The translations under genes and the position numbers were made by a program. Shown here piece by piece: positions 739 to 57,606 of a stretch of 64,000 bases of DNA. Source of the DNA: Perkinsela sp. CCAP 1560/9 (lineage: Eukaryota; Protista; Euglenozoa: Kinetoplastea); NCBI GenBank assembly GCA_965644495.1, contig CBFFSA010000001.1, positions 1,302,001 through 1,366,000 on the forward strand, given 5' to 3'. Under the pieces are notes generated by a model, which was not told the origin of the DNA, searched no databases, and saw only the letters and a program-made list of their open reading frames with translations. How positions within the stretch are numbered: the stretch's first letter is position 1; the number at the start of each line of letters is the position of its first letter.

Positions 739-3521
739 ATTTTATCAAGTTGGCAAATTTTTTGTGGCAGTGCAAAAATTAGTAAAACAAAAATTAGTGA
801 ATTTTTAATTAGTAAAACTTTTTTACTATTTTACAATAAAAGTTTTACTAATTTTTGCGAGCACTGTAAATGTTAAATATAAACTATCATGAATAATTTT
901 TTTGATTCCGGTTTTTAGCGCGCAAAGCCTTTGTGTTGAGATCTGCAAAATGCAACAAAAATCAGTTCAAACGGACACTTGGCTGAAAAGTTAGGTGGGG
1001 TGACTTTTGACTGCGGGGGGTTTATGTGTTCTTTCCTTCTCTCCGACAAATTACCTCTAAACACTCCGTGGCGTTCTATGTTGTCAAAAACTATTTCTTT
1101 TAATATCACCTTGTGTTTTTCAATTAGATCAGTAACATCTTTGTCAACTTTTTTCACTGTATGTTGCCGCTCGTAGTTAAAGCCCCTTTCTCTTTTTTTT
1201 CGTCTACCGCCATTATTCACAATGGCTTGAAAAAAAGCTGCACCCTTCTTGATCCTGGAAACCGCGCGAACACTTACCGAGTATTTTTCGCCGAGCTTCT
1301 CATCGGATTCGACTCATCAGATTGACATAGAGCCAGCTTCTGTTGAGTAGTTAAATGATTGTGTGTTATAATTTTTTTCTCGGGCGGCAATGTACTTGGG
1401 TTTTCTTTTATCAAACCGCTATAAGGTATGGGGTTTTATAGAGCACCGACTGTGGGGCAGGAGGAATGGTTGCCCGGTCAACCATGTCGCCCGTGCTGCA
1501 ACACAAAAAGAATTAAAAAAACTTTATGAACGGGTTTCCCCAGTTGGGAGTCTGGACGTGGAAAATATTGGCAACGGAGTCCGTCTCTATCTTCCCCTGT
1601 TCAGATTTCCCATAGTTTCGTACTATGACTCGTTTTGTTTTCTTGTACTATTACTTGTTTTTTATTTTGCTGGGACTCGATGAAAACTCGACTGGCCAAA
1701 AACAAATAAAAAAAGAGTTTGGAGGTTCAAATCAAAGACAAAATGCGTGCAATGGTCCGCAAAATGGTAAAGATACGGGGTCTGTAAACGGCTGTAGAGT
1801 TAATCAAGGACCGATTGTCACGACGAAGAGCTATTATTTCAGTACAAGGAAATTCCGCATTGGACTCATTGTGAACTAATGTGGTGAACCAAAAGTAGTG
1901 ATTCACTACATAAATGTAGTGAGCTAACCCCGTGTAGTGAATCACTACGGGTAAACTCCAGGGTATGAATCGGCGTATACCGTATACCCCCCCAGTAATA
2001 GAATCGATTTTGGGCCAAAATGGTCAAATTTCTGTTACTGGGGGGGTATGCTTTTTTGGTGGGAAAAGACCTTTTTGGTTCATGGGTGCATTTTTCTCCA
2101 GAAAGTGCAGATCTGCCTTTTGTATCTTAGCCCTCCCTTCATTACTCTATGGGCACTTAAGCAAATATTTATCGTTAACATCTCATAATTATCATCTTTG
2201 TTTACCCGAATTCTATCCTTACAGCGAAACAAATTTGATCATCCTATCAGCTAAAGTGTTGTATATCATGTCCTTCCACCTACCCTCTCTCATTAATTCT
2301 AATGAATATAATTATAAATTTTCTTTTTTGTTATACCGTGGAAACATTAATTAAGAGACACATTAAATAAGGGAACGCCAATTAAGGGAACACTAAGATG
2401 GTTAAAACCTGTTAGGTTTTGCCAGGATTTGCCAAGTTTTACCTGGTTTTGCCAGGACACCTATTTTTTGGGGCGCCATTTTGGGAGACGTGCCACGGCT
2501 TCAGGAAGGGGTATCTAGTAAAAGCAACGGCGTAGAAAGCTAGTATAGGTCCCAAACTCTCAAACTACTATAGGTGAAACGATTTTGAAAAACTATTTTT
2601 TAAGCCATGTTTTTCGCTAAGTTGACTTTTTTTAGTTTTCTTTTCAGAAAAAACTGAACTTGGCGGCCCCGCCCTGTTGATACCAGGGGGAGTCGTCCCC
2701 GAGTACGGGGGTGGAAAATGTGCGCCAAGACCTCGGCTACCCTTTCTGGGGGTGTATTTCGAAAAATATTATTTTCAAAATCTTCATTTTTTGTGGCGCA
2801 AAAAATGTTTTGCAGCGCACGATGGAGACCAAGTATGTTCTTCACTATTTTTGACAAAGTATTTTTCTTCGCCACGTCAATGAGGAATATGTGGGTTTTG
2901 CCAGGTTTTGCCTTTCATAGGTTTCAACCCTCTTAGGCGGGTGATGGTGTATTTTTACACGCTTAAAATGGCCAACGCTTAGCGATGGGGCTAGCCCCCG
3001 AATACAAGGGAAGATTGTATTCTTGGGGTGGTGGTGAGGCTTCAGCCCCTTTACTTGCTTCACCCTGAAGCCAATTAAGGAAACACTAATTTATTTAAGG
3101 GAATAATTATTTTTCGTCGATTTTTGGCATTTTCAGGCAATTAATAATTATTTTTTCCACCCATGGCCCAGGCTGAGATGATATTGAATACGAACTGAGT
3201 CTCATGAAACTAGCTCGGGTAAGTACATTAGTTCTCATTCTTGAACGACACGGATACCGTAAAAACAGATTGATACGCCCAAAAATGATAATTCCAAGAA
3301 TTGTGTTATTGAATGAGATGGTGAATGGATTGCTCTTTTTCAAGGGTTGGATTTTTGTTGCCTGAAGCCCAAGTTATCTAGGTTTTATCTGGGTTTACCC
3401 CAATTTAAAAACATTGTAGAAGTTTTTTATATGCAGACGAAGATAACAGACGCCCATATCAGTATTAGTTTCTGTAAATCAATAGGTACATAATGCACTT
3501 ATCTGAACTCATCTCACAAGG

Positions 3522-6822: not shown

Positions 6823-7453
6823 AACTAAATAACTCCTAACTGAGTGGTATCTATGAGAGTCGAGGACTCAATACGCCCTATGGCGAACTAAATAACTCCT
6901 CACTGAGTGGTATCTATGGGATATTTCTTCTGATGCATATGCGGTATGCTCCATGTATTATGAAGAATGTTTTTATCTAAAACCTAGTTATAGAAAATAA
7001 ATTTACAAAAATTGTAAGAATGTGCGATATTATCTGGATATTACTACCTAGTCTCAGAAATGAAATGCCGTCGTCATTCTGATAATGATTTTTTAAAAAT
7101 ATACATTAGGACTCACAGTAGCCCTCTGCGCTGCAGTACCAGGCTAGGCGTCCGACCTCCGCCCGTTGCAGGAAGTGCGCATCACTGCCCTGAGCAGGTT
7201 CTAGTGAAGCATAACTTCCTATTACGCGGCTAGTTCTCCTTTAACCCTGCTGGTCAAAGCCCATAGTCGGACGCCTCAACCCCCCACCTCTCTTTTTCTG
7301 CCCTGCAATATTCGTAATCCTCCTTCCATCCCCATTTTTACCACTGATGTGAAACACAACAGATGGTGACCCCGGGCTTTGGACCGGTTTAGCAGGGTTA
7401 AATGAGAACTAGCCGCGTAATAAGAAGTGTTTATTCATGATCTTTTACCAATT

Positions 7454-14557: not shown

Positions 14558-15287
14558 AAAATTAGTAAATTCTTAATTAGTAAAACATTTTGCAAAATTC
14601 AGGTTTTACACCTTACATTTTTTTGTTTTTTTCGGAATTCTATCTTTTTTTACGAAACGTTTTCAGATTACTATTATTCAGATTATGTCGCACGAAAGCG
14701 AGCAAGATTTCTGTGAGCAAGATTTTTATTAATATTATTTTTTGGGGGTGTTTTTTACTCTGTGCTACAGACACATGTTACTTTCCCCGCTCCTGATTTT
14801 TTTCTGAATCTCCGACTTTCTTGTTCGTTATACTCCTATTTTTAAAAGACTTTCTCCGCTCCGCGAACGCGAAACATCGCTCTCTTGTATTTAAGAGATT
14901 TTTTTCATATTTAAGAAAATACTCATGTAGGGACATTGTATGGGAGGGGGTAAAAGTCAATCCCTTTTGGGGGAATATTCTTTGTAAGGATTTTCTTTGT
15001 AATACGCTTCACTGAAGCCTGACACACTCAGCATGGGGAAGCATGGTCGGGACCTCCTCGCGGTCTTCCCTAGCATTACCATTTTGCAGATGGTACTAAC
15101 GCCGACCTTAGAGGAGGCAGCCTACTCAAGCGACAGAAATACCGTTTCTGTAAAAATTGATTTTATCAAGTTGGCAAATTTTTTGGGGCAGTGCAAAAAT
15201 TAGTAAAACAAAAATTAGTGAATTTTTAATTAGTAAAACTTTTTTACTATTTTACAATAAATGTTTTGCTAATTTTTTCGAGCACTG
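14558..15287. mobile_element. Second, left-truncated copy of the ribozyme/SL-motif MITE
   Basis: Near-identical to 137-866 at offset 14421; ends CACTG|TA. Confidence 0.85.
15035..15107 (+). ncRNA. HDV-like ribozyme (copy 2)
   Basis: Same sequence as 614-686. Confidence 0.85.
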
Positions 15288-16775: not shown

Positions 16776-17100
16776 CATACCCTGGACTTAGCTCCGAGTA
16801 AATTAAGCATCATTAAGCACAACTAAACCACATACCCATTTAACATACCCCCCGGTATGTTATCAAAGTATAGGTATGTTTATCAAGGTATAGGTATGTT
16901 AAGTAGACTGGCAATGAAATAGGAAAGAGAAGAAAATCACTTTCACTGTTAGAACCTGTATCTAAAGATGTACCGCGCGTAGTAGCAAATGCTAAAACGT
17001 ATCAAAATACATCTAAAAACGCATAAAAGAAACATTTTGTTAAGAAGGTACGTGATACTACGGTTGGATTTTTGTACCGTTCCACAAAAATGACTACGAT
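16776..17100. repeat. Repeat family B / CATACCCTGG-type transposon end
   Basis: Related inverted segments at 20543-20790 and 21383-21500. Confidence 0.6.
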
Positions 17101-17139
17101 CGACGTGACGTGCTACAAAAATTTGTATGCGTTTTCTTT

Positions 17140-18129
17140 AGGCTCTTCGCTTTAAACGCGGTGGTTGTTTTCAACTTAGAAGTCACTCATGCTGCGCTCT
17201 TCGCGTTGAAAACTACCACCGCGTTTAACGAAGAGCCTTAAAAAGAAAATTTGGCCTGGAAAATTGACCAAAACGGAAAGATTATAGCCAAAAATAGTCG
17301 AATTTCGGGTAAAAATCGGGTGATTTTTGGGTATTTTTGCTCTGAAAGCACTAAATCCGACATTTCCGCGTGGGAAATCACTAGTAGGCATGAATGAAGC
17401 CTACCGAACGTATTGGGTAGAGAATGCAACTCCAACCATACCATTCTTTCGACACAAAAATGCCCCTTTAGGTCCGAAAAATACTTTTTCACCTTTTTTA
17501 GTCAAAAATGGGTCATTTTGAGTGGCGCACCACGGTTCGAAGAAGGGATACCTTGCGAAAACAACTGCGGAGAAAGCTAGTGTAGGTCCCAAATTATCAA
17601 AATACAATAGTATATTACCTATATTAAATACAATAGTATAGTAAATACAATAGTATATTACCTATTCAATAGTATAGGTCCCAAACTCTCAAAATACAAC
17701 ACCGGAAAAGATTTTGGAAAAATAATTTTTTTGCCATTTTTTTCGCCAAGTTGAAATTTTTTTTAATTTTTTTTTTCCGAAAAAATCCGAAGTTGACGGA
17801 TCCGTCCTGCGGATACGCAGGGGGGTCACCCCCGGGTATGGGGGTGGAAAATGCGCGCCAAGACCCTGGCTACCCCTTCTGCGGATTATTTTCGAAAAAT
17901 AATTTTTTCAAAAAAAAAATCGTGCGGTATGCCCCCCCCTAGACCCCCCCATAGACCCCCCATTTTTTTCAATTTTTTTTTTCAATTTTAGACCACCGGA
18001 GCCCCCTTTTACAATTTTTTCTTCTATTATAAAATATTTATTACTGTGTTTCACTTTATATTTTCACTGTTTTTGTTCACTTTTTTTCAATAATCGAGGG
18101 TAGGGCGGTAGTTATACAACCACCGCAAT
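17140..18129 (-). mobile_element. Family A element, full length (Helitron2/Helentron-like, non-autonomous)
   Basis: Large palindrome at one end, CAACCACCGCAAT at the other; no TSD seen. Confidence 0.75.
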
Positions 18130-18509
18130 AAGAAAAAATATGATGGGGAAAAAGTGGATTAAAAAATAAGGAAACGTGCACGGAAAAAAACTCAGAAAAA
18201 CAGTAAAATTTGTCCATTAAAAAAGCTTCATTCGAACCCTTGACTCCTTACCAATCTTAATCCCGTTCCTTCCGCTTTTTGCTTTTTCCTTTTAGATGCA
18301 CTTACATGCATCGGCATGCGTGTTCAGCACGTTTCTCCTGTTTTTGAATTCTTGTCACTCCGCCACCTCCGCCCCCTTGGACAAGCGGAAACTGGTAGAG
18401 GACGTCGGCCTCGGAACTTCCAAATCTGTCTGTGCAGGGTCCGACTTGCCAGTGACCGTCCGGAGCAATCCGGAATGATTTGTATTTTTTGGTTCTTGGG
18501 CCTGAGACA

Positions 18510-18770
18510 AGTGGCGGAGTGGCAAGAATTCAAAGTTTGAAGCACATGGTGCTCAGACGGCGAGTTCAAACCCGATCATCGCATTATTCCTGGCGGCCTC
18601 ACTCTAAGAGACTGAGATGAGAACCGACTAGGCCCAGTACTCGGAAGACCGTCCCGGACCCTCCCCTCAGGGAACCAGCTCCCTTACCCGGCTTACACCT
18701 CTTGGGTAAGCCGTGTTGACGTACAGTTCGTCGACGCAGCGTGTTGGCAACAGCACGTTGGTGCCGCCTT
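18510..18770 (+). mobile_element. tRNA-headed SINE-like repeat
   Basis: A box TGGCGGAGTGG, B box GAGTTCAAACC, core CCTGGCGGCCTCACT...AGGCCCA...GGAACCAGC...TTGGGTAAGCCGTG shared with 54853-55267; inverse copy at 62246-62450. Confidence 0.65.
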
Positions 18771-19394
18771 GTACTAACGAAAACAGGTAGAGGACTTCGG
18801 CCTCGAAACTTCCAAATCTATCTGTGAAGGGTCTGGCTTGCCAGTGACCATCCGGAGCAATCCGGAATGATTTGGATTTTTTTTTGCCTGAGACAAGTGC
18901 CGAAGACAAACTCTTCGATGTCATCATGGCTTCGACAGTCCGGGTCTTTACAAAGAGGCCCGACGTTTTCTCCGAGCAACGATTGGAGATAAGCAATGCG
19001 GAGCTTAGTAGTAAAGTGGATGAAATCGCGGGGCGCGTTTCATGCACGGTGGACAACTTCCTATATTTTGCGCGCTCTGTGTGTGGCATTGAATTGACCT
19101 CGTGCATCGTGACTCGTGTCCTGTTTCACTTGGTTGACCTCCGGGGCCATCTGCTTCTTAGCGTCCGCTCTCGGAGCGCGTACTCAACCGCCGACCTTGA
19201 AGCGTACCTTCAAGACATGAAGGACTAATTGTTCGAGTAACCAGATGGTTTTGCTTCAGGGAGAAAGGCTCTCAGAGGACGTTTTTGGCTCGCAGTGGCT
19301 GGCAGCGTTTGTCACTGGCTCACAGTGGCGGTCTGCATGGGTTCCTATGACTTAATGATCAATTCAAAAGTACACCACATACCCGTTTAACGTA

Positions 19395-20540
19395 CTGTGC
19401 CCCCCCACTTATTTGTCGTAGTCCCCCCCCCCCCCACGTAATTGTCCTTTTTGACGAGACTGGGCAGGAGGCGCCGCGAAGCGGCGCCGGAATTTTTTTT
19501 TTTGGGGGGGGGGGGGGGGCAATTTTTCCCTACGAACCTCATACATACAGTGTATCAGAACCCGGTGTCAGTAAGTAGTATTGTTTGTATATACTTTCTA
19601 CTTCAAGTTTTTCATATCACAATACGCTATACCTAGCTACGTTTTTTTTTCTTTGAAACTTAGTCCACCTCTTCCACAGAGTGGAAGAGTGACGCGTCTG
19701 TGGAAGTATAAAGAGTTACTCCTGTTGTGCGCGGTTTGCTGGCTTGGTTCCAGGTTCGGTTTATGGCCAATCGGAAAATATCCGATTTTCCAGTGTTCCA
19801 TTGCAAGAGAAGTACGCTAGATAATCTTGAATCCCAATTATGGACATGCGCCTGACTTGTACATTCGAAGAGGAGTTCCATAGCATAATCAACTTCATAC
19901 AGCGGTTTGCGTGCGATTCTGAGTACCCAAAGGCAAGCCAGCGTACTGCCGTACGAACAGTAAAGTCATCATAAGTAGACTTTGGTGTCACCCGCGATGA
20001 GACCGTTTCACTACGAACTCGCCAAAAAAGAATGTCCTTCTTCCATTCGTATTCAACTCCCCAAAATTGGCCTTCAGACTTTCGCAGAATGGTTTTGGTT
20101 CTTTCCAGTACGCCTGTAAAATTTTGGAATCCTCCCTGCGAACAACCATTCCCCACCACCACCACTCCCTTCTTCCTTCACTGCGAACAGTCATTTCCCA
20201 CCACCATCCCGGTCGTCTCGCCCATGCCGCCTTGATGCTTGGGTTACAATATGGCCTCCTGCCCCACGAGTCGGTGCTCTATCAAACCCCATACCTTATA
20301 GCGGTTTGACAAAAGAAACTACTACTACTATAAACTTTACTAGTACGGGAAAGGTAGAAAAACTACTCATTCGATAAAGATACCGTTTCTGTAAAGCCAA
20401 CTTTATCCGAACGCATTGGAGATTCCTAAAATAATGAAAAAAGTTTGGGACTTTTGTTTCATCTAACCAAATAAATTGACCTCCCCCACTTAATTGTCCT
20501 TTTTTTGAAAAAGTGGTGACAAATAAGTGGGGGGGCACAG
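19395..20540. mobile_element. TIR element with TA TSD, cargo ORF remnant and SL-like motif
   Basis: Perfect 23-bp TIR CTGTGCCCCCCCACTTATTTGTC flanked by TA; inserted in a family B copy. Confidence 0.85.
20364..20393 (+). other. Spliced-leader-exon-like motif
   Basis: TACTCATTCGATAAAGATACCGTTTCTGTA. Confidence 0.6.
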
Positions 20541-21219
20541 TACCTATACCTTGGATAACATACCGGGGGGGTATGTTATTATGGCCTGCGACACTTAACA
20601 TACCCCCCCTCGTCCCACGGCTTTTTTGTGCAACGGTTCAAAAATCCAACCGTAATATCACGTACTTTTTAACAAAATGTTTCTTTTATGCGTTTTTAGA
20701 TGTATTTTTATACGTTTTAGCATTTGGTACTACGCGTGGTACATCTTTAGATACAGGTTCTAACAGTGAAAGTATTTTTCTTCTTTTTTATATATCTTCA
20801 CTAGAGTTTGTTTATCATGCGCTCTTTGGCGCAGAGATAATCCCCTTAATGCGACGGCCGATATCATCGGCACATAATCCGCCCACAACGGATGTCGCCA
20901 AAGGGGGTTCGACACGGACTCGGTCGGTAGAGGAGGTCCAGGCAACTCGCCCTCTTTTTACGCGGCCGGAGGGGCGTACTGCAACCGACTCGGTCCCAGT
21001 CGGTAGAGGTGGTCCAGGCAACTCACCACCTCTTTACGCAGCCGGAGGGGCGCTCTGCAACCGACCGCTGCCTCGCGATAATGCGAGGCAGAGTCACGCC
21101 CAGTGGTCCTCAAGGGAGGCCACCATGGCGCATAGCTCCCGGGAAGAGACAGGCGCGAGAAGAAGAAAGCCGGGGAGGGAAGAAAACTCACTCAAGGAGT
21201 GAGCCGGGGAGGGGTGAAA

Positions 21220-21382
21220 AGTCGGAAGTACGTCCCCTACTTCCACGGCAAAGAGGGACAGTCCCTGCTAGCCGTCAGCCGGAAACGGGCATTTAAAAGG
21301 AAAATGTATGCCCGTTTCCGGGAAAAGAAATGAAGGGCTAGCAAAATGTACCAACAAGGTACAGAAACTGTATCTTTATCGT
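21220..21382 (-). ncRNA. SL RNA gene-like sequence, 5'-truncated, possibly a pseudogene
   Basis: ACGATAAAGATACAGTTTCTGTACCTTGTTG|GTACA has the SL core and donor at canonical spacing, a TGTAC/GTACA stem across the donor, then further hairpins and a short T-run. Confidence 0.55.
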
Positions 21383-21989
21383 AACATACCTATACCTTGA
21401 TAACATACCGGGGGGGTATGTTAAATGGGTATGTAGTTTAGTAAATTAAGCATCATTGATTCATGCCGAGTAAATTACTCGGAGCTAAGCCCAGGGTATG
21501 GATATCACGTATAGTTTCTCTGTCTCTGCCAAAATTTTTGGCCAACTCATGAACACTAAGCTCCTTTTTACATTGGCGGACAATTTCAAGGCCCTCTGGG
21601 AGGGTACATCGCACTATTTTATGAGTGATTGGGGGTGTTTTGTTTTTGGGAGAGTTGGCATACTGTCCTTGTGTAGATTTAACGGGAGTATCCCACAAAT
21701 TCATTGAATGAGAAACCATTTATAAAGAAAAAAAGCTCTGAAAAATTGGAAAAAATGGATTTTCTTTGTAATGGATTTTTGGGAACCTTGGATGACGTGA
21801 TGATAGAAGCCTGTACCGTACGATGTGAATTAAGGAGTTCTTGTAATCCGCTGTTTAAGGAATTTGAAATTATTGTCCAGGCTCAGAACCAGAACCAAGA
21901 TATAGCTCATACATTTTCTTGTTTGGTATATTTTATTAAGGGAAGTACGAAGTTAAACGTTTTTGGGGGAAACAAAGTCCCTTTTGACC

Positions 21990-42885: not shown

Positions 42886-44670
42886 CATAGCTTAGACTAG
42901 TAAACTAGTAATTACTATAGTAGTTACTAAAGTTACTACTTAAAAAGTAGTAATTACTACTTTTTTCCCACACGTAAATTTTGCATACAATGTATATTTT
43001 AAATATACATTGTATTAAATAATTTAGTGCGAAGAAAATAGAATGTACGTGACATCCTCATTATTTGACGTTCTAAACTTATTTTAAGCTCCAGCACTTT
43101 TTCACAAAATGAAAAGTCCGATCGAGTACCCTTCTCCCCCGAACACTCGAAGACGCAGGAACGCCACTGCGCAAGCTCATCGAGAAAACGCGGCTGCCGT
43201 AATGGAGCGACTAGAAACAACTCCAACACAAATAGCGGTTAACGCGGAAAATGCGTTGATCCAGGATTCTCCTCGCCCTCGTAGAGGAAGAAGCAATATT
43301 GGAAATGACCCCCTATCGTTCGATTCTCTCAGAAATCAAAACATCTTGGTTTATGAGAGATGTGACTTCACATGCGCTGAAAAAGGATGTGAAGCTTGGG
43401 CCGTAAAAAATGCCGAAAACCCCGTCAACACCATTAAATGCGACAGCATGGGTCACGCTAGACACGTGAAATGTACGCAATGCTCTTTTATAACACACAG
43501 TAGGATTGAAGCATTGTGCTATAAGCACTTAAAGACTTGCACAGGCGCAATCAGCGACAACGACGCACAAGTAGATGCGAAATCACAGAAAGCCCAAGTC
43601 CAGCAGTTTGTACAAATTGATTGGCCACGTCTTGCCGCGAAACATAGTCTGTCGACGGATGCTTTCCTTAAGTTCGTTGCAGAATATGAAGCTCTCCGCC
43701 CCTCGAAAATAGTTTCAAAGGATGTCATCGACGCAACACCTAGTGCGAAGGTGTTTCACCGCTACGAACGCCGCGTCGCCGACAAGGTGTGGGCCTTGGT
43801 CAATGAACAGCTTGATCGAGCAACGTTTTTTGGCATGGCAGTGGATGGTGGGGTTGATACCGTATTACATGAGCATGTCCTGATTGCGATTTTGTACGTT
43901 GGTCGTAAGCATTTCGTACTGCCCCCGATTTACCACCCCAAGCACAAAGGCTACTTTGTGGCTGTGACTCTATACTCTCCATATTAGGTCACAAGTACTC
44001 AGCTCGCCAAGCTTCTATTGGTACTGACGTTGTGTCAACGCAGATGTTTCTTCGAGGTAATTTACGGGTTTTGTAGAACTCTTATTTGCATTACTCTATT
44101 GTGCGCAAACTGTACGAAGGATTTCGAACTTGGGCGAACCCTCGATTTTGAATTATCATCATTTTTTCTTTTTGCATCATTGTGCGAGATATGCAGGACG
44201 GACTTTGAACTTGGGCGAGCATGTCATTTTCGGAGCTGGTAAAAATTAAATTATGTGCTCGATTGTGCTTACGAGTTTTGCTTCTGTTTTCATGTGGATT
44301 TTTTCCGTGGGCTCTATTCAATCGCTTTGTTTTCCCCCATGTGAACAGAATGACTAAGTTTAAAAATTGATATCAGTTTATTTATCGGAGCTTACGTTTT
44401 GGAGTATGTTTTGTAGTACACATCAATATTGAAATATTAATGTTGAGAATAGTATTGAGATATTCAGATGAATGGAGGATGGTGATATTCAGTCTCCACA
44501 ACAATAAAAATACCGTTTCTGTAAAGTAGAGCTCTTCCAAAGCTTAACATGTTACCTAAATCTGACCAAAAGTACGTGACCAAAAAAGTAGTAACTTTAG
44601 TAATTACTAGTAGTAATTACTAGCCTGTTTACTACTTTTAGTAATTACTAGTTTACTAGTCCAAGCTATG
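42886..44670 (+). mobile_element. hAT-like element with 6-bp TSD and truncated transposase (43109-43987)
   Basis: TIR CATAGCTT(A/G)GACTAGTAAACTAGTAATTACTA; TSD TATTAC checked against the uninterrupted family A sequence; CxxC..H..C finger and FFGMAVDGGVD first-D motif. Confidence 0.8.
44497..44523 (+). other. Spliced-leader-exon-like motif
   Basis: CACAACAATAAAAATACCGTTTCTGTA. Confidence 0.55.
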
Positions 44671-45340: not shown

Positions 45341-46906
45341 TGGTAATATGCAGTCAAACTGTACCCTAAATTTCATTTTTTTTTACTTTTTTTTGTCAAA
45401 AAAATATGTGTGATTAATTATTTACTTGATAGTTTTGAGTCATTTTCACCCACTTTTAAGCTTTGTTTACGTCTGAAACCATTGAATGGACTGCTCAGGG
45501 TGTAGACCTTTTGCGTGCTTGACGCTACTTACGTCAATTTTGCAAATAACGTCAGAGAATGTTGTTTCCTGGCTAGTAAATCACTCTTTCGGGGCTTATA
45601 CACAGTGTCTTCGCTGCAAAGAGAAACCGAGAAGCGATCAATGCTTCAAAAAACTCGAAGACGGTTCGAAGTGCCGCCTAAAAATTCCGAAATTTGGCCC
45701 CTTTTTTCCTTTAAACTGTCGAATTGTTGATAAATTTCGATGTTGGCTGCTTCTAGCGCAAGGTAACCTGCCCTTGAACGCAGCTTTGCAAGCGCTCAGG
45801 TCTCTTCGTTCAGTTCTTACAGACCTAAGTGAAATTGAACGCATATTCAGCATTCCCCGTTCCCCGCACATGCTCATGAAGTACGTTATGGTGGATGAGA
45901 CATACATTGGGAAACGCCTGCACCATCGCGGGAGACAAGTCCGCAAACAAAAGTTCTGGTTTATGACGGCTACAGAGGTTGATCCAAACACCGGGAAATC
46001 ATTGCAAACATACTGGGAGGCAACGGTTCGCCGAACGAGAGAGGTTTGCCACAGATTTGTCCGATCAGTCATAGAAAATAGAAATGCCATGGTAATTACT
46101 GATGAATGGGCTGCATATCGTGGAATCGATGCCTTTTGCCGACATTACACTATTTGCCACGCTGATGCATTCTCGCGAGAGCACTCCCCGCACGTCAACA
46201 TTCATATCAACAACGCAGAGTCTGCCCATGCCAGTGTAAAGGGTTACTGCAAGCGTTTTTTTCACAAATGGGGCAGAAGTTTGGAAAGCTCTCAGGCACG
46301 AGCGCATTTTATTTGCACAGTCTTCTTCAAGGCGGAAGCTAAAAAGCGTTTTCAGAACCTTATGACTGTTATGGCGAGATACTCCTCTGACAATAGCGCG
46401 GTATACGGAGATCAGTCAAATGAAGAAGATGCGGAAGTTTCCAGTGACTCTAGTGAGGACTTTCAGGAAGATTATGAAAGCCCAACCACGCGACTAGGTC
46501 GAGCGCTCACTGAACATATAAGACTCAAACGCAGATATGGAAGGGATGAAATGGGATTCCACAAGTATATGATAAAAAGTGCCACTGACCGCCACTACAC
46601 TATTTATGTTGGTCCTGGTGGTGCTCGATGCACTTGCCGTGACGGACGTCTGGGCAATCGATGTAAGCATATATATTTCATTTTGATGCGGGAACTTGGG
46701 GTGGATGAAAACCATTCAGTTCTATTAAAATCGGAATTTTCATCAGAAGACCTATCGAATTTGTTGTAGACGAGGCAGGAATTATCGGTAAATTGTCTTA
46801 TTCATATGCAAATTTGCGTAAAAACAAAAAAGGAACACATATGTGATGGAAATATACAGTTTTTAGAAAAAACAAATTTAGGGTACATTTTGACTGCAGT
46901 TGACCC
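45341..46906 (+). mobile_element. Intact Merlin/IS1595 transposon
   Basis: ~32-bp TIR (TGCAGTCAAA.TGTACCCTAAATTT), 8-9-bp TSD AAATATTT(T), inserted in a family A copy. Confidence 0.9.
45486..46769 (+). CDS. Merlin transposase with C-terminal SWIM zinc finger
   Basis: VMVDETYIG, VITDEWAAY, HYTICH, HINNAES; CTCRDGRLGNRCKH. Confidence 0.9.
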   Translation: MDCSGCRPFACLTLLTSILQITSENVVSWLVNHSFGAYTQCLRCKEKPRSDQCFKKLEDGSKCRLKIPKFGPFFPLNCRIVDKFRCWLLLAQGNLPLNAALQALRSLRSVLTDLSEIERIFSIPRSPHMLMKYVMVDETYIGKRLHHRGRQVRKQKFWFMTATEVDPNTGKSLQTYWEATVRRTREVCHRFVRSVIENRNAMVITDEWAAYRGIDAFCRHYTICHADAFSREHSPHVNIHINNAESAHASVKGYCKRFFHKWGRSLESSQARAHFICTVFFKAEAKKRFQNLMTVMARYSSDNSAVYGDQSNEEDAEVSSDSSEDFQEDYESPTTRLGRALTEHIRLKRRYGRDEMGFHKYMIKSATDRHYTIYVGPGGARCTCRDGRLGNRCKHIYFILMRELGVDENHSVLLKSEFSSEDLSNLL

Positions 46907-47588
46907 AAATATTTTTTTCATAAAAAATTGCTCGACCATGACATGAAATGTCAATTGCTCGACCATGAAATTTATCGAACGCTATTTCTTAATTTTTTTG
47001 TAAACCAAAGAATTTTTTCTGTTATTCTACTTAAGATGGATTATTTTGTGAACGTGGATGGACGCGCTTCGAAGAAATTTCTTACAGAAAAGCGCAAATG
47101 GTTGATTTCTATGCTGGAGGCATAGAAGGCATGTAATATCACTTACTTTCTTAAAGAAATGTTTCTTTTATGCGTTTTTAGATGTACCGTCACCCCCCCT
47201 CCCTTGACTTAGCCTGCCAAAAAGTCGAAAAAATAGGAAAAAGCGGATAAGTCGCCCAGCCGACTGCGGGCCTAATTTGTCCGAAGGAGCGTCTTCGTTG
47301 CTCGGTCGCAATCCTATGTCGTAATGCATATTGCACTGCCGGATCCTAGGAGTTCTTCTAGAACTCGCGTTTTCACCAAGTCTTTTCTTCCACGTAAATT
47401 CAACCAGGACAGGTGGGATCGGTCGGGATCGTAAATCTCTAGTTTCAACCCGCTCAGCTTCAGATATTAGATTGATTCGTGAAAAAATGCACATGTAGGG
47501 GAAAAGACAATCTTTTTGGGGGGGATTTTCTTTCTGAGATGAAGATACTGATTTTTGTAAAACGCGATTCACTGAAAAAAAACAGCAT

Positions 47589-47661
47589 GGGGAAGCATGG
47601 TCGGGACCTACTCGCGGTCTTCCCTGGCACTACCATCTTACAGATCGTACTAAAGCCGACC
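47589..47661 (+). ncRNA. HDV-like ribozyme (copy 3, diverged)
   Basis: Same P1/P2/P3; GG P1.1 partner intact, L3 UACUCGC, J4/2 CUAA; followed by T7. Confidence 0.8.
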
Positions 47662-51268: not shown

Positions 51269-53487
51269 CATACCCCTGCCGGGTAAATGGGTAATTACCC
51301 GGGCCTGCGACCCAGTTACCCGCACCGACCCGCACCGACCCGCATTGACAGGTCGTCTTAGAAAGCTACATATACATGTATACATCTGTTTGTTGTATCT
51401 TGTCATCGGGAAATAAACGTGCATCTTTGTTTCGGACCTTATGGTGAAGTGTTTTAAGGCTAAGTAAGAAATCAATAATCATATTACTCTTGTGTTTGAT
51501 CGCACTAACTAATCTCTTCTTACTTAAACTTATCTGTACTCATGGCTCGTCAACGACGATTAGAGCAGACACCTAGCACGCCTGAATTATTTTCTTCATC
51601 TGATACTGACGATGGTAATACCCCTGAGTCAAAAAAAATGAAGCATCGCGATACTATACGGCACAAAATGACTGTAGAATCCTTATCTGGGCAATTCGTG
51701 CTCGTGCGCTGTCCTCCCGGAAGCACCCACGCACACAGATATTCTCACCGATCCTTTGGGCCAAAAGCTTCATTTCATATGTACCAAGGAAGGATGCGCT
51801 TTTGAATCTCACTCTCGTTATAAAAATGTGTATCACAAGCATCGCCGCGAGTGCTCAAGATCTCTTGAAAATTCCCGATTGGCACAGGTGGCGAGTGCGA
51901 ACAATCAGGGAGTAATTGTACAGCGCTTCGTAGGAAAAGTACTGCCATGCTTACAGACCCTAACGAATCTTTCTTCTAGTCGGTTTTTCTGGCTCGTGCA
52001 TAAGTACGAGGATTTACGCCCTGATGTACCTGGAACAAAGATAAAAAGAGACCTTCCGGAATCAAATTTAAAGAAGTGGCACCACTATTGTGAAGTTCCA
52101 CACCCCCTACATGGGTGTGGAAAAAGAATGTTCTTCCTGTCTTAAAGGCTTCTGATCGGGTTGGAAACTTGGCAAGAACGGAAAGACGTTATACCGTGCG
52201 AGAACCAAATGTTCGACACTGTCTTTGTCAGGAAATCGGATCCAACATAGAGGAAGCCTATGACATGGAGTTTCGTAGGATCCGAAACATAGTCGAACGC
52301 TTCATTGCTCGCTTAAAGCAGCATCAACTTTTCTATAACAATCGCCATAAGAAGCACGTTCTACGTTCATTCTTTGGCTTGCTATGGAACGCTGAGTGCA
52401 TTCACTGGGAAGTCGAAAATCCAAATCTTTACCCCGATTCCGTGGAACACTTAAAGGAAAGTGATTCGCGAGTCGCTGAGTGGAAGACACGAAGTTTCTG
52501 CTCCTGTAAGTTTCATAAGGATGATAAAGAAGATCAAGCGTATATCAAAAAGTATCGCGATCATACTAAACTACTAGTTCATATGGTCGGAGTGCGCCCT
52601 GGTAAATGTCCTGCACACGGGTTAAAAGGAAAAACTACGTATGAGAGATTGACGAAGAGCGAGATAAAGGACAGAGATTCTGAAATAAGAATTCAGAAAA
52701 GAATTGATCAGCAGGAACGAAGGAAAAAAAGCGAACGGCTTAATCGTCAAGCTCTTTCGGAATTTAAGCAAGGTGAATGAAGCAGTCACATTTAGTAGCC
52801 ATGTACATGTATGTATGGACAGATTGATATTAGTAGTTGACACTGAAAGCAATGATAATTTCGTACGATTTGCATGGACCTCGAACTAGTCTCCCTGCAC
52901 CCCCCACCTGGACCCGCCTTCCACCCCCGGGAACCCCCACCCGGATCCTCCAGCGAACACCATAGCCGAAAAAACGCCAAGTACCTTTGCCATTGGTTTC
53001 TCTTGGGACCTGACTGGGTTTGCCTGGGTTTGCATTTTACTGGTTTCAGCCCTCTAAATGTTTTCTATGTGGTGATTCTTTATAGTTTCACCTTAGTTGC
53101 TAGGACTCGAGGGTAAACTCGACTGGCCAAAAAAAAATAAAGAAAATTGGTACCATTGCGGTGTTAGGGGTAGGCTTCTTGTTGGCCTAGGGGGTTCACA
53201 CCAAAAAAAAAATAAAAAAAATAGATGGGCGACACAAGCAAATCAGTAGAGGGAATTCTTCTTATGGAAGGAATTCCTCAACGCTAAAGATACCGTTTCT
53301 GTACATAGAGCATTCCGTGCCAATCCTACAAATCAGCACACTTGAGAGGAAATTATTTTGTATTTAATGGCTAGTGCGCCGATGCGTGTCTGTGTGGGTC
53401 GGTGCGGGTAACTGGGTCACAGACCCGGGTAATTTACCCGCACAGACCCGCTAATGGGTAATTACCCATCGACCCGGCAGGGGTATG
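51269..53487 (+). mobile_element. CATA-ended TIR element with 6-bp TSD nested in the YR element; chimeric transposase remnants
   Basis: TIR CATACCCCTGCCGGGT, TSD TTTGTA; 51756-52145 resembles the N-terminus of 43109-43987; 52115-52780 has DDE_Tnp_4-like RNIVERFIARLK. Confidence 0.85.
53277..53304 (+). other. Spliced-leader-exon-like motif
   Basis: CTCAACGCTAAAGATACCGTTTCTGTAC carries both SL blocks AACGCTA and GTTTCTGTAC. Confidence 0.7.
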
Positions 53488-57352: not shown

Positions 57353-57606
57353 GACGATTACTTCACAGGATATCGGCATTGTCTTTCACTTACAAGCTAT
57401 ACAGTTGCAAGTTATACATGTATTAGCATTAAATGTTAGTGCTGATAATAACCAATAAAGTGAGGTAATAACACAGTAAAGCGTTGTAACCCAAATTAGA
57501 TTTCTTCCAATTATATCTCCCCCCTCCTCCTCTGGGCTTAGGGGCCCAGTACCTGGCTTTGGACAGGTTAAGCGGAGTTAAGGAAGCCCATTAAGCATGG
57601 TGTGTG

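Follow-up and report, generated by a model that had tools for sequence, protein, structure and literature searches.

The hAT-like transposon at positions 51269-53487 of the 64-kb stretch of Perkinsela DNA analysed here (the window, 64,000 nucleotides in all) carries near its right end, downstream of its transposase, a short motif that resembles the body of the spliced leader (SL). What is part of a leader exon doing at this end of a cut-and-paste transposon, and where did it come from? The element belongs to a family that we call F1, and its parts are as follows.

51269-53487, + strand: hAT-like DNA transposon F1, with TIRs of ~32 bp and the 6-bp TSD TTTGTA; relatives at loci L001, L002 and L013
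51542-52096, + strand: N-terminal part of the F1 transposase, frameshifted, in sense with the box (91-93% identity to the L002 ORF by tblastn)
52097-53048, + strand: foreign PIF/Harbinger-like (DDE_Tnp_4) segment that stands in place of the hAT core in this F1 copy
53099-53127, + strand: second bulged stem-loop, then an A-tract
53249-53279, + strand: stem-loop in place of SL nt 1-5
53279-53303, + strand: SL box, SL nt 6-30 with A21 changed to C, 22 of 25 positions identical; the exon 3' end and the donor are missing, and the right end lies 184 nt away

We searched the whole window for the motif. A 19-nt query gave seven matches at three or fewer mismatches, against 0.01 expected, and a profile scan returned the same seven and none in shuffled DNA. 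A preliminary description of this DNA had reported the motif in four host elements, and the recurrence holds at each place (cores at 719-731, 15140-15152, 20381-20393, 44511-44523 and 53291-53303), as do the TSDs given for the four hosts (TA, TA, TATTAC and TTTGTA), the outward-pointing subterminal position (the core ends 135-184 nt before the right end), the hairpin of different sequence ahead of each copy, and the lack of the TTG|GT end. Its consensus was idealised: AACGCTA occurs in the 53 kb copy only, and the host SL reads AACGATA. Two + strand copies had been overlooked, a divergent one at 1762-1786 and a degenerate one at 47535-47559. A copy on the minus strand, at 21352-21382, retains the complete exon end followed by GT; it is of another class, that of the SL-headed retroposons. 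The other relevant features of the window are listed here.

96-866, + strand: F9 MITE, TA-flanked, with Tc1/mariner-type ends
614-686, + strand: HDV-like ribozyme of F9, with P1, P2, P3, L3, P4 and J4/2 all present
690-731, + strand: F9 stem-loop (690-706) and SL box (707-731, 19 of 25)
1744-1786, + strand: F10 stem-loop and divergent SL box (19 of 25), 181 nt inside a hAT-type right end at 1967
15035-15152, + strand: second F9 copy, whose HDV-like ribozyme (15035-15107) likewise shows every canonical pairing and is followed by a stem-loop and the SL box (15128-15152); the element ends on the right at ~15287
19395-20540, + strand: F2 pogo-type element, TA-flanked
20353-20393, + strand: F2 stem-loop and SL box (20369-20393, 21 of 25)
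20807-21382, - strand: SL-headed non-coding retroposon, the contrast class; it begins with SL nt 8-38 and retains A21 and the complete exon end
42886-44670, + strand: F5 hAT-like element, TSD TATTAC, with a transposase fragment at 43109-43987 on the + strand
44473-44523, + strand: F5 stem-loop and SL box (44499-44523, 21 of 25), 147 nt from the right end
47499-47661, + strand: degenerate cassette of a stem, a decayed box (47535-47559) and an HDV-like ribozyme (47589-47661); the pogo-type left end of the host element lies near 47187

We examined the genome for the leader of this organism itself. Exon ends of the kinetoplastid type occur at 106 sites, and among these a full SL RNA gene was located at L033/L034 (G000:C1 ~661.3-661.9 kb). 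Its exon is 38 nt long and begins with AACT, a GT donor follows, the intron can be folded into stem-loops, and a 5S rRNA gene is linked to it. A divergent tRNA-like element with A and B boxes lies ~95-100 bp upstream of the gene. A JGI metagenome contig (L117) has an identical SL exon and the same layout of 5S, tRNA-like element and SL, with diverged spacers. The gene with its intron and gene context is present in these two places only; the box copies are without it. The divergent tRNA-like element gives the SL gene the layout of a Pol III snRNA gene, unlike the Pol II SL genes of trypanosomatids. The snRNA genes of trypanosomatids have such a tRNA-like layout and also need an intragenic element (PMC4950102).

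Compared with this gene, the six clear window copies are identical at 19-22 of 25 positions over exon nt 6-30, and match at 0-3 of 5 positions over nt 1-5 and 0-3 of 8 over nt 31-38. The upstream part of the box matches the SL at 7-11 of 11 nt in 21 of 22 family representatives. Part of the SL varies between kinetoplastid species, and the box includes that part; it therefore comes from the SL of this host. The box is a copy of the organism's own SL, as the preliminary description had supposed. It is not itself an SL gene: nt 1-5, the exon end, the GT donor, the intron stems and the 5S or tRNA-like neighbours are all missing.

Several minor observations concern the SL gene. Loci L048, L053, L054 and L055 are retro-pseudogenes of unspliced SL RNA, slightly 5'-clipped, which end after the last stem in an A-rich tail and are accompanied in three cases by tandem repeats. 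The F2 element shares a 12-nt match with the region upstream of the SL gene, and the match is not seen in the L117 promoter. A compact ENA metagenome contig (L051) with a RecQ orthologue (50% identity) near an OCRL-like gene, and without an SL-like motif, appears to come from a TE-poor relative.

Two classes of SL copies are found in the genome (21 Mb), where an SL 18-mer has 516 matches at one mismatch. Most of these keep A at nt 21 and continue past the exon end into retroelements; they are ordinary SL-headed relics and number several hundred. The transposon class follows a different rule at nt 21, which is a pyrimidine: C at 66 exact sites and T at 27, the latter against 7 for the control G/T pattern. 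The A-form is followed by a base other than the C of the exon 7 times only. Every one of the 66 C-form sites lies in a DNA-transposon-type family and none has the exon end, and 17 of the 19 inspected T-form sites lie in further families of this type. There are about 100 copies of the transposon-type box in more than 20 DNA-transposon families. Where an element terminus is recognisable (59 of 82 rows, a few of them doubtful), it lies 112-244 nt downstream of the box.

The orientation of the box with respect to host genes is random. It had been described as always on the + or host-gene strand, which is true inside the window, where the + strand carries all the long intronless host ORFs (UPF3, OCRL-like, RecQ), but fails genome-wide, with 54 boxes forward and 50 reverse; a host-strand bias is rejected. 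Next to LRR or Alg9 host genes the box is antisense in six cases and sense in four, so the earlier rule arose from looking at this window. Of the 66 exact C-form sites, five fall inside the window and one more lies immediately upstream of it; this density is ~25 times that of the genome on average and probably reflects local transposon density. The inspected sites, which were chosen by intact motif, are uninterrupted, and insertion of CRE/SLACS/CZAR-type retroelements within the SL sequence was found in none of them. The transposon-type box was not found in the JGI metagenomes or viral contigs searched, where ten of 11 looser matches are due to chance and the other is a true SL gene. The hAT-like transposase, searched in other genomes, gave three matches only, 74-100% identical. 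The box class is known so far from one genome.

With respect to its own host elements the box has a fixed position and sense: wherever a transposase remnant could be tied to an element (hAT-like, pogo or Merlin), it lies 3' of the transposase and in sense with it. Random placement is thereby contradicted, as the place near the 3' end is the same across unrelated transposon superfamilies. The four hosts in the window had been taken for unrelated. The motif does cross superfamilies, but the two elements with 6-bp TSDs encode related hAT-like transposases (~31% identical), and the hAT-like transposases of the box families are in general 31-38% identical to each other and go with 6-bp TSDs. For F1 the assignment draws on motifs, a relative matches Pfam Dimer_Tnp_hAT weakly (E=0.018), Hermes takes ranks 1, 3, 5, 6 and 9 among the fold matches of a low-confidence model of the hAT-like transposase (best E=0.06, weak), and a PDB profile search with this transposase gave no match; the predicted hAT-like nature of the F1, F4, F5 and F7 hosts is thus weakly but consistently indicated. 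The pogo hosts F11a and F13 match DDE_1 at E=2.4e-14 and 7.4e-5, and F11a has a TA-type right end. The Merlin host F19 matches the Merlin of the window at E=4.5e-23, has an IS1595-like transposase between TIRs starting with GG and carries a sense ORF ~160 nt before its box. A further superfamily is probably Tc1, as a DDE_3 ORF lies 650 nt upstream of a box in an element whose left end was not found. Downstream of six other transposase ORFs of the window, no clear box was seen over a distance of 900 nt.

The Merlin elements of Bodo saltans and Perkinsela are the only DNA transposons reported in kinetoplastids, in a study that did not establish TIRs and TSDs for the Perkinsela Merlin and did not mention the spliced leader (PMC8101967); trypanosomatids are without cut-and-paste DNA transposons (PMC12278014). 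We also observed an intact Merlin-SWIM ORF in the window at 45486-46769, with at least four near-identical full-length copies elsewhere, and a hAT-type TIR pair at 16776-21500 around several nested elements, F2 and the SL-headed retroposon included.

Partial copies of SL exons are known in genomes as relict SLs of retroposed mRNAs, in dinoflagellate retrogenes (PMC6050394) and likewise in the SL-headed retroelements of this genome, and such retrocopies are the likely source material of the box. Relict SLs stand at 5' ends, keep the 3' end of the exon and are decaying, whereas the box stands 3' of the transposase, stops at nt 30, has a fixed substitution, follows a helix and is conserved between families. 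The preliminary description was therefore right to deny that the box is a simple retrocopy relic. Nor is it the end of one small nested repeat, since the flanks cannot be aligned between most families. The SL gene, a relict SL and a single nested repeat are accordingly ruled out as identities of the box.

Such copies could also have been captured and then simply carried along. On this account the 5' end of an old SL-plus-HDV retroposon was taken up once or a few times and has been hitchhiking since, and the position of the box reflects tolerance only. The abundance of SL-headed retroelements and the existence of decayed boxes agree with this, as does the order of SL and then HDV, which resembles the 5' end of a trypanosomatid retroposon. 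The island of conservation formed by the box argues the other way: in more than 20 families its core is conserved between flanks that can no longer be aligned, hAT, pogo and Merlin elements agree in the change at nt 21 and in where the box stops on its 3' side, and a helix is kept ahead of it with different sequences. A neutral relic appears disfavoured by these comparisons, and we consider it the least probable of the explanations weighed here. The feature is real and SL-derived, and it is very probably under selection.

We examined the surroundings of the box for conserved RNA structure. The flanks are mostly unalignable between the more than 20 families and the core is kept, and a helix of unrelated sequence ends 12-13 nt ahead of the core, where the cap-4 nucleotides of the SL would be. 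The helix is held in register: minimum free energy (MFE) folding places it so in 14 of 22 representatives (shuffle mean 4.6, maximum 10), and a positional profile has two peak positions, each with a strong helix in 10-11 of the 26 representatives (shuffle mean 1.2, maximum 4), with the reservation that the representative families are partly related, so that the shuffle counts overstate independence. The sense strand gives the more stable hairpin in 16 of 22 cases, and the hairpin alone does not fix the strand. Whole-region folding z-scores are weak. Inside the box, having a pyrimidine at nt 21 disrupts the 5-bp hairpin that the SL forms with itself and also removes a CAG.

Further parts of the cassette are common to families of different superfamilies. 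The second bulged stem-loop and A-tract occur with compensatory changes in the hAT families F1, F10 and F18 and in Merlin F19 (53099-53127, 1669-1696, L103 and L108; eight exact-pattern copies genome-wide), pogo F11a and hAT F16 have a common downstream hairpin (z 8.3), and hAT families that are sisters and agree fully in their TIRs nevertheless differ in their cassettes. Neither a downstream hairpin in fixed position nor an A-tract as a general feature is supported, a polypyrimidine acceptor upstream of the box is not above background, and the cassette matches none of the Rfam covariance models.

In some families the cassette is accompanied by an HDV-like ribozyme. A cut site, or the start of a decayed remnant, lies 33-45 nt past the box in pogo F11, F11d, hAT F20 and the F9-type elements, and by descriptor an HDV-like fold stands beside the box in F9 and F11, with the box outside the fold; most box families are without a recognisable ribozyme. 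The F9 order is box, ribozyme and box in tandem, with a decayed first box just upstream of the ribozyme (clearer in L056 and L132) and the best-kept box downstream of it. An obligatory link between box and HDV was rejected, as a box is found nearby in ~11 of 30 exact-L3 copies, and about two thirds of the HDV copies lack a clear box. Inspection and Rfam led us to reject a hammerhead, hairpin or twister reading of either strand. At L164 (G000:C20 ~148.7 kb) we observed an HDV-like copy that begins exactly at G1 after a poly(A) run, which fits a retrocopy of cleaved RNA and suggests that the HDV-like ribozyme may cut in vivo.

These structures bear on whether the box acts as DNA or as RNA. As DNA, it could be an outward-facing promoter or transcription-factor site, in line with the suggestion of the preliminary description that it may restart or cap transcription, if the SL exon doubled as an intragenic promoter element firing toward the right end. 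The box does point outward near the end of the element, and the divergent tRNA-like element of the SL gene in two organisms is that of an snRNA-gene layout, with its need for an intragenic element (PMC4950102). There is also a precedent in Pr77, the 79-bp signature of the trypanosomatid retroposons ingi, L1Tc and SIDER, which combines a ribozyme with a promoter bound by TBP and SNAP50 (PMC8190864, PMC12278014). Pr77 resembles the box in being a short kinetoplastid mobile-element module tied to an HDV-like ribozyme, and through TBP and SNAP50 it is linked to the machinery of the SL gene. It differs in standing at the 5' end of retroposons, in being a tested promoter and in not being reported as an SL-exon copy in these two papers, whereas the box stands at the 3' end of DNA transposons and is known here from sequence alone. 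Duplex DNA, however, has no need of a sequence-variable helix at a fixed spacing, the cap-proximal nt 1-5 of the SL are not conserved and a stem-loop stands in their place, and no tRNA-like boxes were seen upstream of the copies inspected. The random orientation to host genes also means that rescue of downstream host genes cannot be the general purpose of the box. We therefore regard a promoter as unlikely, and a restart or capping of transcription at the box is not supported. The variable-sequence helix at fixed spacing and the downstream ribozyme point instead to an element that acts as RNA, at the 3' end of the transposase mRNA.

An RNA element at this place could be a 3'-end signal in its own right, as a mimic of a spliced junction or as a histone-like stem-loop with a downstream element, which would trigger cleavage or polyadenylation as an alternative to the HDV ribozyme. 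The cassette occupies the same subterminal position as the HDV ribozymes and is found mostly in families without one, and its anatomy of a stem-loop, a purine-rich linker and a fixed box would suit such a signal. Yet it coexists with an intact HDV in pogo F11a, no retrocopy was seen with a poly(A) end at a fixed distance from the box, and there is no Rfam ribozyme match to the cassette. Polyadenylation in kinetoplastids, as far as it is known, is coupled to polypyrimidine tracts. A signal of this kind is slightly harder to credit than a promoter.

We favour a reading in which the cassette is a selected RNA element in the 3' UTR of the transposase, where it would recruit a reader of the SL body for an RNA that is ended outside normal processing, and we give this a probability of roughly 0.45. 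The poly(A) site of a kinetoplastid gene is tied to the next splice signal, so a mobile gene cannot count on host 3'-end formation. Kinetoplastid mRNAs are cut from polycistronic RNA by trans-splicing and polyadenylation (PMC6597758). Transposase RNA would be made by read-through, and the coupled trans-splicing and polyadenylation of the host would be unreliable for its 3' end. The box may have been captured from SL-bearing cDNA, which is abundant here, and then passed on between transposon families. The complete cassette would begin with a stem-loop and continue with SL nt 6-30, which have a pyrimidine at position 21. A second hairpin often follows, and some families add an HDV-like ribozyme at a distance of 33-45 nt. 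The RNA would end near this cassette, by the ribozyme where one is present. The change of A21 to a pyrimidine would break the SL self-hairpin and leave the box single-stranded, and the box could then recruit the factor by which the host normally reads the SL body of its mRNAs, with a gain in stability, export or translation. This function is what we infer from the arrangement of the conserved parts.

The part of the SL that is kept would suit such a role. Zeiner reportedly found in 2003 that nt 10-29 of the L. tarentolae SL, and not nt 28-39, are needed for cap 4 and polysome loading, which would be the part kept in the box. Structured 3' elements that replace the normal marks of an mRNA end are also known from the 3' cap-independent translation enhancers and tRNA-like 3' ends of RNA viruses and from the histone stem-loop; the likeness to the box is a functional analogy only. 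Several points count against the 3'-UTR reading: most box families are without a ribozyme, most HDV copies are without a clear box, several transposon families in the window are without a box, and the best-kept box of F9 lies downstream of the ribozyme. The weak folding z-scores of the whole region and the hairpin's failure to fix the strand weigh against it as well. It is possible that an upstream splice acceptor places the box on a separate short RNA.

A short RNA with the box could serve another end, as a decoy that titrates an SL-binding factor or SL-targeting machinery, or as a means of making silencing costly, since small RNAs derived from it would resemble anti-SL. In sequence the box comes very close to an RNA that is essential to the host, from which it departs by a fixed mismatch in the middle, and the ribozyme, and possibly an upstream acceptor, could release such an RNA. 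The mismatch, however, is not needed to avoid toxicity, because several hundred retroelements carry perfect SL copies in both orientations, and the helix register is left unexplained. We rate a decoy or anti-silencing role as about as improbable as a 3'-end signal.

The 3'-UTR reading has a wider form, which we hold with similar reserve, at somewhat less than even odds: three or four DNA-transposon superfamilies would have converged on, and exchanged, a structured mimic of the SL body, so that their transcripts could be matured or translated outside the rules of trans-splicing and polyadenylation, and this would reveal that the host has a factor able to read SL nt 6-30 without relying on the cap. 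The feature is apparently undescribed, and no report of an internal SL mimic in DNA transposons was found in the open-access literature searched. It touches on two questions. One is what accounts for the strong conservation of the SL exon body in kinetoplastids, and what reads that body; the other is how cut-and-paste transposons obtain usable mRNA where genes are transcribed polycistronically. The natural variants, more than 20 in number, set nt 6-30 apart as a unit, apparently able to work behind a hairpin without a cap, and these variants are a ready bait and mutational series.

Other possible structured RNAs were observed in the window outside the cassette. Sub-threshold matches to twister-P1 occur at 57518-57584 (- strand, E 0.001) and 7322-7404 (- strand, E 0.024). 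A repeated segment at ~20255-20310 (+ strand), upstream of the F2 box, and at ~1385-1450 (- strand) may form an H-type pseudoknot and is a candidate for a further structured RNA.
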